DNA of 64,000 nt. Source: Octopus sinensis. Its lineage: Eukaryota. The stretch is taken from the NCBI RefSeq assembly GCF_006345805.1, contig NC_043011.1, positions 64,864,464 through 64,928,463 of the forward strand, written 5' to 3'. The notes below the pieces were generated by a model. That model saw only the letters and a program-made list of their open reading frames with translations, searched no databases and was not told the origin of the DNA. Below, piece by piece: positions 32,020 to 50,201 of this stretch (within the stretch, counting starts at the first letter, position 1; every line of letters begins with the position of its first letter). Made by a program: the position numbers and the translations under genes.

Positions 32020-32056
32020 ATGAAAAGAATTCTATTCATATTATCTGTAATTTGCG
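32020..32056 (+). CDS. Copy 2 coding exon 1, signal peptide (MKRILFILSVIC-G)
   Basis: ATG AAA AGA ATT CTA TTC ATA TTA TCT GTA ATT TGC G|gtaagg. The phase-1 donor joined to exon 2 gives MKRILFILSVICGATA-SKVC, with a basic n-region, hydrophobic core and A-x-A cleavage motif. Confidence 0.8.
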
Positions 32057-34652
32057 GTAAGGTATACTTACTTCATAAAACAGCGCTCATAAATGACGGT
32101 TCACAGACACCAGGTAGAAGCAGGCGCATGCAAATGCATACATGTGTTTATATATGTTTGTATGCTTGATTGCATGCATATATGTATGTAGGTGTGTATG
32201 TACACACACACACACACACATAGTATGCATGACTCTATGTATGTATATCTAGATAGATGTATACATAGATAGACAGGTGACGTTAGCGATTTTTTTTCTT
32301 CTTTGGACATTTCACTTTCTCCTTCCAGACGAAGAGCTATGCGCGAAACAATGTTTTCTTTGTACACGTTCTCTTGTTAATGCTTACATGTTTAAATGAA
32401 TTAATTGAATATCCGTTTGTATGTTTGAAAATTCCACACACCCTTGGCCTTGTCTCATTTTGACACATTATATTTAACACACACATACGTATGTATGTAT
32501 GTATGTATGCATGTATGCATGAATGTATGTAAATATGTAGATATATGTATTTTATACGTTCATATATATATATATATATATATATATATATATATATATA
32601 TATATATATATATATATACATAGCAGAGTAAAGTAATTTATTTTATAGAAGGAGCTTCTACAGGACTAGAACTGTTTCATTCAGATGAAATCTTCAGGAA
32701 GCTGGCTGTCAAAATAAGGTCTGGTATTTATACATTTAGGCAGATTTAATGGGATTGTGGTGGGGGGCGTTTTGGGGGTAATTTGGTATTTAGGAGATAA
32801 ACAGGGCACAAGCTATTGTTCTTAGGGGAGTGGTCATATATATATATACATATACATGCACACACTCACACGCACATACACACACACCTATATATATATA
32901 TATATATATATATATATATATATATATATATATATATACATCAGCTCGAGAAAGCCTTCGCATATCTCCAGAGTAGTCAATGTACTTGGATCATTACTAG
33001 AGATTTGAACTGCATCATTCGAACTATTGAGCCTCTGGAAGAGGGATACAATGCCCCAAACTGCAAAAATAAATGTGCACGCAGTGGCCCACCCTGAGTT
33101 TCGTCGGCCCGTGAAGAACGCCACCTACACCGGCACCACTTGTAGGTCCAATACTGGAGGGTAAATGAATCAGCTGGGCCGGCCCTAATGACTCACCACA
33201 GAACCATTTGTGCAGAGGCTGTTTGACGTCCTAATAGTGGCCCCATCGCCCTAGATCATCACCAGTGGGTACGCCTGCAGTCCGTTTCAACACGTCAGAA
33301 CTGGTGATCTTCGCCCTTGAGTAATCTCAGACAGTCTTTTCTGACGAAAGTCGATATTGCATTTCTGTGGCAGATGGCAGTGCTAGTATTTGGAGAAGGC
33401 GTGATTGTCATGGCGATGGCTGTGTGGTGGCGAGAGACTCGTGGGCAGGATAGAGCATCATGGTATGTGACTGGATTGAACTCAACTAGAAACTTTGACC
33501 GGTGGCCTTCCAAGACATCGGTCAAGGACGGGGCAATTAAATAGCTGTTGCTTGCTAGATTGACCAAATTTTAAGACCTCACATTTTGCCATAATTTGCA
33601 ATCATGGGAATCACGCGTTCCAATAAGACAACGCCCGTGCCCCTACTGCTAGGCTGATAACATACCTCCTCCAACAGCATAATTTCCAGGCACTACCATG
33701 GCCTGTCCTATGTCTGGACGTGAACCACATAAAACACCTGTGGGGCGAAATCCAATGAAGGCTAAATGACATCCGTCCAACGGCGGCAACTACGGTACAA
33801 ATCACTGAAACTTTAACAGTGCCTGGGCTGTTATCCCAATGAACTACATCAATCGTTTTGGCGCATTTAGTGTACAGAGGTTGCCTGCTGGTAATCAACG
33901 CTAACAGTGGTCACACGAGATACTGAGGTCATTTTTTTTATCCAAGACACTGCATCATCACGTGACGTCAAACATGTTTAAGGATATGGCGATTTGTCAT
34001 TAGAAAGAACCGTTTTCTATTTCGTACGTTTGTGGTATCACTTTTGTGGTTCAGTTGATATGTAATTGCATGTTATATGCCTGTACCTATGTATACGTAT
34101 ATGTATATGCATATATTTATATGTATATATATGTTATTATTACTGGATTGAAGTATCTTAAATTGTGGTCACTTTGAATGTTTTAATTTTAGACGCTTAC
34201 CTACCAGAAGAGTTTCAATACCTTTTTATTATTAGATCATTTTTATTCTTGTAAATGTGTTATATATTTCATAAACTTTTTCTACATTCTGCGATTTGAT
34301 ATAAAAGGTATCGGTTTTTAACATCCCTCCTCCTCAGCCACATGCCAGATATATGAAATCTAACATAGAAGTCAATACTTTGGAAGGAATAGAGCTAATA
34401 TATCCACTGGCTATATGCTCAGAACACGTAAAATATATACATTCCGTTAAATTTACAAAGGAAATTCGGCAAGATATCGTAAAAATGAATATTAAACCAT
34501 AATGTAGCAATGGACGATCGTACAAAAAAGGATTCCAAACAAGATGAGGACAAATATCAATCAAATGTAAATAATGTAAATAATTATTACTGCGTTACCA
34601 ATGAATTAGAAAATAAATTTAGTTGAATAATATGTAATTCTTAAAATTGTAG

Positions 34653-34751
34653 GTGCCACAGCCTCCAAAGTCTGCATGACAGTAGCCGAGAAGAGTGCAA
34701 ATACGCTCTGCTAACTTATCCTGTAAAGACTCCCGACATTCATTTCTGCAG
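34653..34751 (+). CDS. Copy 2 coding exon 2 with a 1-nt deletion (99 nt; frameshift, real or sequencing error)
   Basis: Matches 1,910-2,009 except GAGAAAGAG to GAGAAGAG near 34,690 and a synonymous TAT to TAC. Splice sites are intact. Confidence 0.8.
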
Positions 34752-36745
34752 GTATCTTTTTCTCCTTTTGGTACTAATATTTGTATTTCTTTTATAGTAC
34801 TATCGTTCATATTTGCAACTTCGTTTCACAAAATCAATTGTTTGTAATGTATTACACACAGAGGAACAAAAAAATGTGTTCCGCCACCAGGTGGTTAAAT
34901 TTTCCATCAATCTATTCCCGAAACAAAATATTATAGCATTTGCTCGTGGTGCCCCAGCATGGCCGCGGCCTTCAGTCTAAAACATTTTAAAGGATTGTAA
35001 GTATTTAAGACCGGATTTGAAAGATAAATTACTCGAGCCTTTGATTCAACACCCATTCATACGTTAGGATTTCGCCTGATTAAGAAGAATTCAAATATTT
35101 CGATCATAGGCTTGCGTGTTACTTTTGTCAACTATTATTTAGATAAATGTCTTTGTATTTCTAATTAACGTTATTTCCACCACAGTAATATAAGATGATA
35201 TTCTGATAAAGTGAATCGCCCACAGAATTTTAACTATGGTTGTCCGGAAAGTTTTTGCGGATTTTAAAGAAAAGCAAAAGGGCAATTACATTTTTAATCT
35301 ACTAAATATAAAACATTTTCTTGCACAATGGGTCTCCCTCTTTCCATTGACTTGAAATACCCTCTTCCCAGAATTGAGGTTGTTTCGCGCGCAAAGAATT
35401 CATCAAGGTATCTTTTTCCGTCATCCAGGAATTGAAATTTTTACCAGTAAGACTAGACCTGAATAAGTGGAAATCGAAGGAGCAATATCTGGTGAATATG
35501 GAGGTTGGGGTAACACATCCCGGCCGAGCTGCAGCAATTCTTGTCTGGTTCTCAAAGCCTCAACTGCCAGAAATGAACTTTCTTACCTTCCATTTTAAAG
35601 GGTTACAGAATTAACGCAGGTTACAGGAATATAAACCTTCTTCCACGAAAATATACCTGAAACTGTGCTCTAAATGGAGGTGTAGTCAAATCCTATTTTA
35701 TGCACTCAACCATGTTCTAAAAAAAGTCGAAATGTAAGCTACTGTAAATCGGCACGAACTTTCTGGACAACCCAATATTTCTGATATTGTAAGATGAGCC
35801 GACCGAATTGTTAGCACGCCACACAAATGCTTAGTGGCATTTTATCCGTCTTTATGTTCCGCATTGAAATGGAGCCGGGATCGGCTTCTCCATTCCGATG
35901 TCAATAAGTTACGTACCAGTTGAGACCTAGGGTCAAGGTAATCGGCTACCAACACACCAACAAAAAAGATACAAAGAAAAAGCAATAATTTGTCTGGTAC
36001 CAAAATTTGAAATCAATACTTCAAATATGTAAGGCGGTGGGCTTGGAGAATCGTAAATACAAAATGCAAAATCCTTAGCGATATTTTGCCCGTCTTTACG
36101 TTCTTAGTTTCCCATTCAGCTGAGTTCGATTTTGGATTCCATCTTGTCAGGGTCGACAAACTATCTACCAGTGTTGCACAAGGACTATATAAATTTGAAA
36201 CCAATGTTTCTTATACTAAAAACCGGGAGGTAGATCTTGAAGACAAGTATAGAGGCACTCCGTAGGTTACGACGACCTGTGTTCCAGTTGATCCGATCAA
36301 CGGAACAGCCTGCTCATGAAATAACGTGCAAGTGGCTGAGCACTCCACAGACGTGTATCCTTCACGTATTTCTCGGGGTGATTCAGTGTGATAAAGAATG
36401 TGACAAGGCCGGTCCTTTGAAATATGGGTACAACATAACAGGAAGAAAGAGTGAGAAAAGTTGTGGCGAAAAATTACAGCAGGGGGTGGCACCACTCCTG
36501 CAGGGAACCTCATGTAGCTGTAAGCGTTTTTGCTCAATAAACATTCGCAACGCCCGGTCTGGGAATCGAAACCGCGATCCTACAACCGCGAGTGCGCTGC
36601 CCTTACCACTGGGCAATTTGCCTCCACGATGACAAGAGTAGTTCTGAATTCTATGCTTACATATTCTGATATAAAAAAAAAGAACTATATTGACCGTTGC
36701 CTTCTCTCTATAATTGGTAATACTTGATATGTTTTTATCTTACAG

Positions 36746-49988: not shown

Positions 49989-50077
49989 ACGTCTATGGTT
50001 GTTTGAAGCCTGTTTTATTTATGTAGATAGTCCCTGTAAAGGGATTATTCACAAAACCCGTACGGATTATTGCCCTC
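49989..50077 (+). CDS. Copy 2 coding exon 5 (RLWLFEACFIYVDSPCKGIIHKTRTDYCP)
   Basis: tcttgtag|A acceptor, CCTC|gtaagt donor, 89 nt. Four substitutions versus copy 1, all amino-acid changing. Confidence 0.88.
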
Positions 50078-50163
50078 GTAAGTAATTTGTCGTATTATTA
50101 AATGTGTTATATGAACAAAATAATTTGAAATCAAATTTTACTTTTGCTGGACTGTATTTTCAG

Positions 50164-50201
50164 ATAACAAACCAGGTCCCTCGCCATCGTACACAACTTA
50201 A
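50164..50201 (+). CDS. Copy 2 terminal coding exon 6 (HNKPGPSPSYTT*)
   Basis: ttttcag|AT acceptor, TAA stop. GGC GAC in copy 1 reads GGT CCC here. Confidence 0.8.

Follow-up and report, generated by a model that had tools for sequence, protein, structure and literature searches.

The window analysed here, a stretch of 64,000 nucleotides (nt) from Octopus sinensis (RefSeq assembly GCF_006345805.1, contig NC_043011.1, positions 64,864,464 to 64,928,463 of the forward strand), carries a tandem array of short exons that encode small six-cysteine domains. The original prediction, made from the letters of the window, had described a single hidden six-exon gene for a secreted protein of 150 amino acids (aa) with two such domains. 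When this peptide is mapped back onto the window, every piece is placed at two sites, in two tandem units that are termed copy 1 and copy 2 below. A self-comparison of the window by blastn reveals the underlying segmental duplication of about 23 kb, in which 1-23186 matches 32635-57981 with 97–98% identity across the first ~8 kb, which holds exons 2 and 3, and 94–95% across the remainder. Each unit can be read as two cassettes, A and B, of four exons: a 37-nt signal-peptide exon, a 100-nt and an 89-nt domain exon (exons a and b), and an 86-nt terminal exon that resembles a glycosylphosphatidylinositol (GPI) attachment signal and is followed by a poly(A) signal. This layout gives 37+100+89+86 = 312 nt, or 103 aa, with one domain per cassette. 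The features on the plus strand are listed here, with exon numbers as in the original prediction; E1 and E1′ denote the two kinds of signal-peptide exon.

1-23186, plus: array copy 1, truncated by the window start; duplicated at 32635-57981.
1910-2009, plus: exon a of cassette A1 (exon 2, copy 1), 100 nt; cysteines 1–3 of domain 1; acceptor tag, donor gtatct; boundaries as in annotated relatives.
4001-4089, plus: exon b of cassette A1 (exon 3, copy 1), 89 nt; cysteines 4–6; boundaries as in annotated relatives.
4838-4923, plus: tail A exon, copy 1, 86 nt; GPI-signal-like terminal exon; acceptor attacag, in phase with exon 3.
8623-8659, plus: E1′, second signal-peptide exon, copy 1, 37 nt; MKIIICLLFLLF-G; donor GTAAGA.
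14968-15067, plus: exon a of cassette B1 (exon 4, copy 1), 100 nt; splice sites and boundaries as in relatives.
16222-16310, plus: exon b of cassette B1 (exon 5, copy 1), 89 nt; splice sites and boundaries as in relatives.
16397-16434, plus: exon 6, copy 1, 38 nt; HNKPGDSPSYTT and a stop; good acceptor; possible but unsupported as a terminal exon.
19785-19870, plus: tail B exon, copy 1, 86 nt; acceptor ttcttcag before AT, in phase with exon 5.
32020-32056, plus: E1, signal-peptide exon of cassette A2 (exon 1), 37 nt; ATG; donor GTAAGG; conserved in O. vulgaris; promoter-like region upstream.
34653-34751, plus: exon a of cassette A2, 99 nt; one A missing relative to copy 1; frameshifted.
36746-36834, plus: exon b of cassette A2, 89 nt; AG/GT splice sites.
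37380-37464, plus: tail A exon, copy 2, 85 nt; second frameshift of cassette A2.
43850-43886, plus: E1′, signal-peptide exon, copy 2, 37 nt; donor GTAAGA.
48742-48841, plus: exon a of cassette B2 (exon 4, copy 2), 100 nt; splice sites and phase agree.
49989-50077, plus: exon b of cassette B2 (exon 5, copy 2), 89 nt; splice sites and phase agree.
50164-50201, plus: exon 6, copy 2, 38 nt; unsupported as a terminal exon.
54920-55005, plus: tail B exon, copy 2, 86 nt; completes the intact cassette B2 (E1′, exon 4, exon 5, tail B), 312 nt, 103 aa.
Promoter-like regions: 31900-32019, 8503-8622 and 43730-43849 of the window, and upstream of 10001, 18243 and 21925 in the O. bimaculoides locus.

Much of the predicted gene structure is borne out. 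Exons 1–5, of 37, 100, 89, 100 and 89 nt, are all preceded by AG and followed by GT at their junctions, their phases fit, and the same boundaries are found in annotated models of O. vulgaris and O. bimaculoides. Together with exon 6, of 38 nt, their lengths and phases close to 453 nt and 150 aa, as claimed (exon 2 is 99 nt in copy 2). The spacing C-x7-C-x16-C-x8-C-x7-C-x11-C is present in both domains, and the frame of exons 2–6 in copy 1 is open; exon 1 of this copy is expected ~615 nt upstream of the window start. The statement that the gene is present in both duplicate copies applies to domain 2 and fails for an intact domain-1 cassette. In copy 2, exon a of cassette A has lost one A, which changes GAGAAAGAG to GAGAAGAG, and a 1-nt deletion in tail A changes CACAATGAG to CACATGAG. 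The correction of the exon 2 deletion in the original prediction is thus unjustified, since cassette A2 contains this second frameshift and both lie in runs of only 2–3 A. With two separate 1-nt deletions, cassette A2 is probably a pseudogene. Cassettes B1 and B2 are intact, as is A1 with its first exon outside the window.

Four GPI-tail exons and two extra signal-peptide exons sit in what had been taken as introns or downstream of the six-exon model. The E1′ exons are located between tail A and exon 4, and E1′ joined to exon 4, exon 5 and tail B reads in frame for 312 nt. All five copies of E1′, two in the window and three in O. vulgaris, are identical, and the exon resembles a signal-peptide exon of O. 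bimaculoides. The predicted products, of 103–166 aa, consist of signal peptide, domain or domains, and tail only.

The ends of these products have the features of proteins that are held at the cell surface. The signal peptides encoded by E1 (MKRILFILSVICGATA) and E1′ (MKIIICLLFLLFG) reach a maximal 8-residue Kyte-Doolittle hydropathy of 3.4–3.8. Tail A joined to exon 3 gives ...KKCS-D-KKPHNESTVCIVNLNSMLLAVLVSTIF and a stop, and tail B joined to exon 5 gives ...DYCP-H-DLPEPNSAPCILTLNSILLAVPVWAIF and a stop. Tail A is the more divergent of the two; by tblastn, tail B shares 89% identity with its O. vulgaris counterpart and 74% with that of O. bimaculoides. A GPI-attachment signal typically consists of small residues at the omega to omega+2 positions, a spacer and a hydrophobic end. 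In all five family tails, an omega-site candidate (NSA, NES, DNS or SAS) lies 21–23 residues from the C-terminus, and the final 11 residues are hydrophobic (mean hydropathy 2.4–2.9) with nothing beyond them; the candidate is NES in tail A of copy 1 and NSA, at −22, in tail B. Both an N-terminal signal peptide and a C-terminal GPI-type signal are thus found by these rules, which are a heuristic of our own and not a trained predictor such as big-PI, NetGPI or SignalP. The products are most likely GPI-anchored at the cell surface and not freely secreted.

The cassettes also appear to have their own transcriptional boundaries. Alignment of paralogues and two species shows invariant blocks upstream of E1, E1′ and the O. 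bimaculoides signal-peptide exons: an E-box-like CA(T/C)CTG at about −95, CAACA at about −40, a TATA-like (G/A)TAT(A/G)TA at about −30, and CTAC(A/G)ATGAA at the start codon. At the other end, AATAAA or ATTAAA lies 29–32 nt past the stop in every window tail exon; for example, AATAAA follows tail A of copy 1 at 29 nt and is conserved in O. vulgaris, and ATTAAA follows tail B of copy 1 at +32. In O. vulgaris, eight of nine tails have such a signal; in O. bimaculoides two of four do, and in a third it lies at +54.

Relatives of these proteins were recovered by an exhaustive HMMER search with a 34-column profile built from three peptides of exons 2 and 4 that match the window exactly. They include O. 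vulgaris CAI9735841.1 (P0121), a “hypothetical predicted protein”; O. bimaculoides LOC128249887 (P0122), with six RefSeq isoforms (XP_052830408-14); UniProt A0A0L8GPX5 (P0126), named “GDNF/GAS1 domain-containing protein”; and O. bimaculoides LOC128248155 (P0128), which has at least eight domains and no tail. Four other matches (P0123, P0124, P0125 and P0127) are low-complexity repeat artefacts. The relatives consist of a signal peptide and two to eight or more domain copies, and all except LOC128248155 end in a hydrophobic tail, …NSAPCIVTLNSILLAIPVWSIF. The cysteine spacing 7/16/8/6–8/11 is constant in 19 of 19 distinct domains, down to ~20% identity, and beyond the cysteines the Pro and Asp of a YP..PD motif and the Arg of C.RL are invariant. 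The family can be defined by C-x7-C-x16-C-x8-C-x6-8-C-x11-C, the core YP..PD..C.RL..Y..C, and a 100-nt plus an 89-nt exon in phase 1, all of which occur in both window domains in both copies. Relatives turned up in Octopus only, in a single exhaustive search with a half-domain profile that distant relatives would escape. A word-indexed protein search with the 150-aa protein and a 19-domain profile gave no matches; its negatives are not counted as evidence, because the exhaustive search recovered clear relatives. The relatives that it missed share exact stretches of 34 residues with the query, and negatives from this index are unreliable for short eukaryotic proteins.

The annotated proteins were mapped exon by exon onto their own loci, which yielded eight models from two species. 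All eight have exon boundaries of the same type as those predicted for the window, and all eight end in a tail exon. They also splice across cassettes, with an 89-nt exon joined to the 100-nt exon of the cassette that follows, and bypass the internal tail and signal-peptide exons. The predicted exon 3-to-4 junction therefore has a precedent, because annotated models splice cassette to cassette.

The window array is the orthologue of an array in O. vulgaris, as judged from DNA identity of 93–97% that includes the flank downstream of the array. The identity nowhere reaches ~100%, which places the window in a very close relative of the sequenced O. vulgaris. There are three unit copies in O. vulgaris, and two in the window plus whatever lies upstream. 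The O. vulgaris locus (L001) is OX597831.1:17169723-17259231. The model CAI9735841.1 (10001-79509 of L001) is chimeric. Its start is an intronic ATG (MKFKEEPTFAGPEG, in the same open reading frame (ORF) as window position 4134), its exons come from all three tandem copies, and one of its domains pairs exon a from one copy with exon b from the copy after it. Copy 2 in O. vulgaris is decaying. Its exon a of domain 1 (37561-37653 of L001) is disrupted before the third cysteine, and in domain 2 (49642-49743) the first cysteine is changed to Tyr, in parallel with the dead cassette A2 of the window. The O. bimaculoides locus (L002, CM046618.1:49873471-49918157) has at least six cassettes or remnants, with signal-peptide exons at 2343, 10001, 18243 and 21925, a-exons at 2771, 11351, 19332, 23225 and 32387, and tails at 21243, 25382, 34604 and 44161. 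RefSeq isoforms here differ in their first exons and in internal acceptors, the alternative acceptors removing half a domain. A neighbouring 123-aa gene at this locus was considered as a clean single cassette and rejected, as its 3′ part differs.

It follows from these comparisons that the gene family is real and that it is annotated but uncharacterised. The description of the gene as hidden and unassigned holds at most in this genome, as both O. vulgaris and O. bimaculoides have annotated orthologous or paralogous loci and one UniProt entry carries a GDNF/GAS1 label. Six predicted products were looked up in a public protein collection by exact sequence and none was present, and the locus may therefore be unannotated in the O. 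sinensis genome. A literature search by accession and topic found no paper on the family, and no account of the cassette organisation, the likely anchoring, the RGM-N-like fold discussed below or the evolutionary mode.

The substitution pattern combines a fixed scaffold with freely changing residues. Between domains 1 and 2, the ratio of nonsynonymous to synonymous substitution rates (dN/dS) is ~0.9, the differences are spread over the three codon positions as 23, 20 and 22, and the exons are slightly better kept than the first 60 nt of flanking intron; between the two copies of the unit, exons show no conservation beyond that of introns. When random substitution is simulated at the divergence of domains 1 and 2, all six cysteines are kept in 0.1% of cases, and six cysteines without a stop in 0.02% (P = 2e-4). 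In addition, identical codons are clustered between the two domains (P = 0.001). Divergence from O. bimaculoides amounts to 22.8% in the coding exons and 15.2% over ~1,400 aligned intron positions (Fisher P = 0.006), while the exons are free of insertions and deletions (indels) and the introns have about one indel per 80 nt. A fixed scaffold, a kept frame, and surface residues that evolve at least as fast as neutral sequence point to a genuine gene shaped by diversifying selection rather than a chance ORF.

The fold was predicted with AlphaFold2, for which the target was O. vulgaris domain 1 (3 of 58 residues differ from domain 1 of the window) with a 16-row alignment of domains. The one-domain model has a predicted local distance difference test score (pLDDT) of 94.9 and a predicted template modelling score (pTM) of 0.78, and it is a three-helix bundle with two cysteines per helix, the helices spanning residues 2–10/12–17 (helix 1 is kinked), 27–37 and 43–56. 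Presumably, three disulfides pin the domain. In a model of two domains plus tail, both domains are folded (pLDDT ~80–90) and the last 25 residues are unstructured. Foldseek searches of the Protein Data Bank (PDB) with the one- and two-domain models returned generic helical repeats at E > 1 only and no RGM chains, although short helical queries are little informative in such searches. The original expectation of a small, helical, disulfide-rich secreted protein stands as far as it concerns a spliced gene with an N-terminal signal peptide, by the heuristic above, and two helical six-cysteine domains, while the GPI-like tails speak against free secretion.

Searches for a known family point in one direction. 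A Pfam scan of the window protein gave no significant family match, which agrees with the original statement that the domain does not match saposin, insect odorant-binding protein, Kazal or Kunitz. Below significance, RGM_N (PF06535) matches both window domains in the same register at 17–18 bits (E = 0.003–0.007; the gathering score is 24.2). It is the only recurring Pfam family, found in 10 of 19 single domains at E = 0.001–0.15 (best 9e-4). With the four-domain CAI9735841.1 the score rises to 37.9 bits (E = 2e-9), above 24.2, as the sum of four similar weak repeats. Among PDB sequences, the top three matches of the family profile are RGMB and RGMC N-domains at E = 0.03–0.04, with RGMB first at E = 0.03, and an hhalign comparison with verified RGMA and RGMB N-domains gives P = 4e-4 with a probability of just 36%, over 33 columns from the end of helix 1 to the linker of helices 2 and 3. 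No PDB sequence was matched when the whole protein or a 3-domain profile served as the query. Weak Pfam matches to NPR2, Cofilin_ADF, zf-primase, PKAT_KLD and Vta1_C are dismissed as chance, as none of these families is extracellular and cysteine-rich and none matches more than 3 of 19 domains. True homology of the octopus domain to RGM_N is, on these sequence comparisons, roughly an even bet.

The preferred reading, to which a probability of about 0.6 is assigned, is that the window holds two tandem units of GPI-anchored six-cysteine cassettes that act as a surface ligand-binding or co-receptor module. A single intact cassette would give a 103-aa precursor, and from it a domain of ~65 residues held by GPI on the outer face of the membrane. 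Because all junctions share phase 1, serial splicing of cassettes is possible: a b-exon could join the a-exon of the next cassette and yield GPI-anchored isoforms of two or three domains, and the predicted exon 3-to-4 junction would be such a splice. The cysteine scaffold and the core motif are fixed, the exposed positions diverge as fast as neutral sequence or faster, and single cassettes die, as cassette A of copy 2 seems to have done. The nearest known relative would be the BMP/GDF-binding domain at the N-terminus of the repulsive guidance molecules (RGMs), which are GPI-anchored; the reading of a small GPI-anchored helical ligand-binding module is independent of homology to RGM_N. The most likely role, by analogy, would be that of a cell-surface ligand-binding or co-receptor module with a binding surface under diversifying selection.

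Several points weigh against this interpretation. A dN/dS of ~0.9–1.15 would also be shown by a dead gene. The link to RGM_N is weak, with single domains at E = 0.001–0.15, the 37.9 bits coming from near-identical repeats and the hhalign probability at 36%, and neither structural model has a PDB neighbour by Foldseek. The Pfam GDNF family (PF02351) does not match the window protein, the four relatives or any of the 19 domains at E ≤ 10, so the GDNF/GAS1 label of UniProt is not reproduced; the name of A0A0L8GPX5 presumably rests on another InterPro model. GPI anchoring is a prediction of our own heuristic, and the RefSeq isoforms may partly be ab initio predictions. Moreover, the eight-domain paralogue LOC128248155 has no tail, which means that soluble members of the family exist.

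The alternative that survives best retains the same GPI-cassette anatomy and assigns it to fast-evolving recognition, whether between gametes, in innate immunity or self/non-self discrimination, or in chemotactile sensing, instead of morphogen co-reception, with splicing adding to the diversity. It is a tentative possibility. In its favour, exon substitution exceeds the intron rate, dN is close to dS with both above intron divergence, and tandem birth and death has left dead cassettes in both species. Copy number also varies, from at least two units here to three in O. vulgaris and at least six cassettes in O. bimaculoides. Developmental co-receptors are usually conserved and single-copy. Birth and death, copy-number variation and above-neutral divergence of exons point to a rapidly changing partner, as in recognition, immunity or reproduction, and the pattern is less like that of a conserved developmental co-receptor. 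The recovery of relatives from Octopus only is also in line with this alternative, but the half-domain profile misses distant relatives and the restriction to Octopus is not established.

The six-exon model itself, a single gene whose 150-aa product ends in HNKPG.SPSYTT and a stop and is a soluble two-domain protein of salivary, venom, pheromone or defence type, is unlikely. The polypyrimidine/AG acceptor of its exon 6 is good, keeps the phase and lies just 86 nt past exon 5, and at the equivalent site in O. bimaculoides there is an ORF of equal length that stops at the matching position. The ~200 nt directly after exon 6 (16435-16647 and 50202-50414 of the window) are the best-conserved part of the unit in comparison with O. 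bimaculoides, at 10% divergence against ~15% in introns and ~23% in coding exons; this stretch could be an untranslated region of a soluble isoform, or an element governing splice or poly(A) choice. A soluble product is also suggested by the tail-less paralogue LOC128248155 and by the fast, toxin-like change of residues between the cysteines. Against it, exon 6 is used by none of the eight annotated models, and a gene ending HNKPG..SYTT does not fit the locus, where the tail exon with which all eight finish is present and carries GPI-signal features and a conserved poly(A) signal. The exon 6 peptide has no GPI or anchor features by our heuristic, O. bimaculoides has a weaker gAG in place of its acceptor, and its sole poly(A) signal, ATTAAA, lies at +96 and is not conserved in that species, compared with +29 to +32 for the tails. 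Furthermore, the model leaves unexplained the E1′ and tail A exons within its intron 3, and its copy 2 version is frameshifted. Use of exon 6 as a terminal exon that gives a soluble isoform is, from the sequence features, equally doubtful. The proposed candidacy as a soluble venom, pheromone or defence component lapses in consequence, since it requires a soluble product and none is supported at the locus.

Somewhat less probable still is a combinatorial surface-protein locus, in which every cassette would have a promoter and a GPI-tail terminator to itself while the splice phase is common to all, and the choice of promoter, splice partner and poly(A) site would determine whether single RGM-N-like domains or strings of two or three different, fast-diversifying ones are displayed. 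This would be a small-protein counterpart of the logic of clustered protocadherins, an expansion for which the octopus is already known, and it could serve cell-surface identity or recognition in neurons or suckers.

Least probable is that the array is a decaying relic with recognisable exons and no functional protein: dN/dS near 1, the even spread over codon positions, exons no better conserved than introns between the copies, the two frameshifts of cassette A2, the cysteines lost from O. vulgaris copy 2 and the lack of annotation for any of six predicted products would agree with it, but three of four cassettes are fully open with cysteines, splice sites, tails and poly(A) signals all intact, exons are indel-free beside indel-rich introns, exon substitution above the intron rate is unexpected in a neutral relic, and the copy-specific variants of domain 2 are common to the O. 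vulgaris orthologues, just 1–3 residues apart.

If the preferred reading is correct, octopuses carry a lineage-expanded, fast-diversifying family of very small GPI-anchored surface proteins, and a helical module otherwise seen only as the BMP/GDF-binding head of RGMs occurs in autonomous, co-spliceable cassettes. Such a family would be a testable candidate for cephalopod-specific cell-surface recognition or for the tuning of morphogen signalling. It would represent neither a new fold class nor a new mechanism. The analysis also corrects annotation, as the O. vulgaris model is chimeric and the locus may be unannotated in this genome, and it shifts attention from venom and pheromones to membrane anchoring, tissue localisation and ligands.

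The remainder of the window is rich in mobile elements. Between the two array copies lies a retroelement (24018-29345) with terminal direct repeats of ~590 nt (24018-24606 and 28771-29345) that are 96% identical, and with a 486-aa ORF resembling reverse transcriptase (RT) at 24743-26203 on the plus strand, whose closest named relatives are Argonauta hians proteins at 38–44% identity. ORFs with RT fragments that look, as read from the sequence, to be of Penelope type occur between E1′ and exon 4 in both copies (11347-13373 and 45386-46198), and a GIY-YIG-like ORF (12813-13373) lies within this region. RT ORF fragments of the long interspersed nuclear element (LINE) type, at 18185-18565 and 52622-53898 on the minus strand, are found inside the intron between exon 5 and tail B, and because of them this intron is 3.4–4.8 kb here compared with ~0.9 kb in O. 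bimaculoides. Copy 2 alone has a 2.7-kb insertion (40596-43271) with an internal direct repeat of ~410 nt (41874-42284 and 42500-42913, 92% identical). Long TA/CA-rich tracts resembling microsatellites, at 8744-9075, 13961-14184, 43970-44540 and 62990-63440, recur among these sites and give rise to spurious “YIYIYI” ORFs. An Rfam scan of the whole 64-kb window gave no matches.

Among known systems, the annotated octopus relatives share with the window the domain, exon structure, signal peptide and tail. They differ in that they are labelled “hypothetical” or “uncharacterized”, that the O. vulgaris model is chimeric with a spurious start codon, and that LOC128248155 has at least eight domains and is tail-less. 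The GFR-alpha/GAS1 proteins (PF02351, SMART SM00907) are alike in having a signal peptide, two or three small all-helical cysteine-rich domains, and a GPI anchor, which is a prediction in the octopus. A canonical GDNF/GAS1 domain has ~100 residues, five helices and ten cysteines, while the octopus domain has 58 residues, three helices and six cysteines, and no GFR-alpha/GAS1 chain is among the PDB profile matches. The cysteine-rich domain of Frizzled (PF01392) is also helical and rich in disulfides and shares the local motif C......Y....PD...C.RL; this domain has ten cysteines and ~120 residues. Frizzled 8 chains are the next PDB profile matches after RGM, at E = 0.12–0.3 over 27 columns, which is not significant.

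A further comparison is with the RGMs. The octopus proteins are not orthologues of RGMA, RGMB, RGMC or DRAG-1, as no Pfam scan gave a match to RGM_C and the products contain only signal peptide, domain or domains, and tail. They have no RGD loop, no RGM_C or partial vWD domain and no GDPH autocleavage site, and their domain is tandem-repeated, stand-alone, fast-evolving and multi-copy. The outer cysteine spacings are x7/x16 and x11 in the octopus and x4/x22 and x21 in RGM, and the octopus helix 3 is ~10 residues shorter. In contrast, the central x8 and x7 of the RGM_N pattern (x4/x22/x8/x7/x21) are common to both. In the RGM N-terminal domain, three helices form a bundle that contains three disulfides, and the protein that carries it is GPI-anchored (PMC7354924). 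RGM_N structures (PDB 4UHZ, 4UI0, 6Z3H and others) and the octopus domain are alike in having three helices and six cysteines in ~60–70 residues, with the helices, the disulfides and the GPI anchor of the octopus proteins being predicted. Finally, both contain the motif D..[FY]C..L..Y..C......C, which extends from helix 2 through the linker into the beginning of helix 3, the region where RGM makes its contacts with BMP/GDF ligands.

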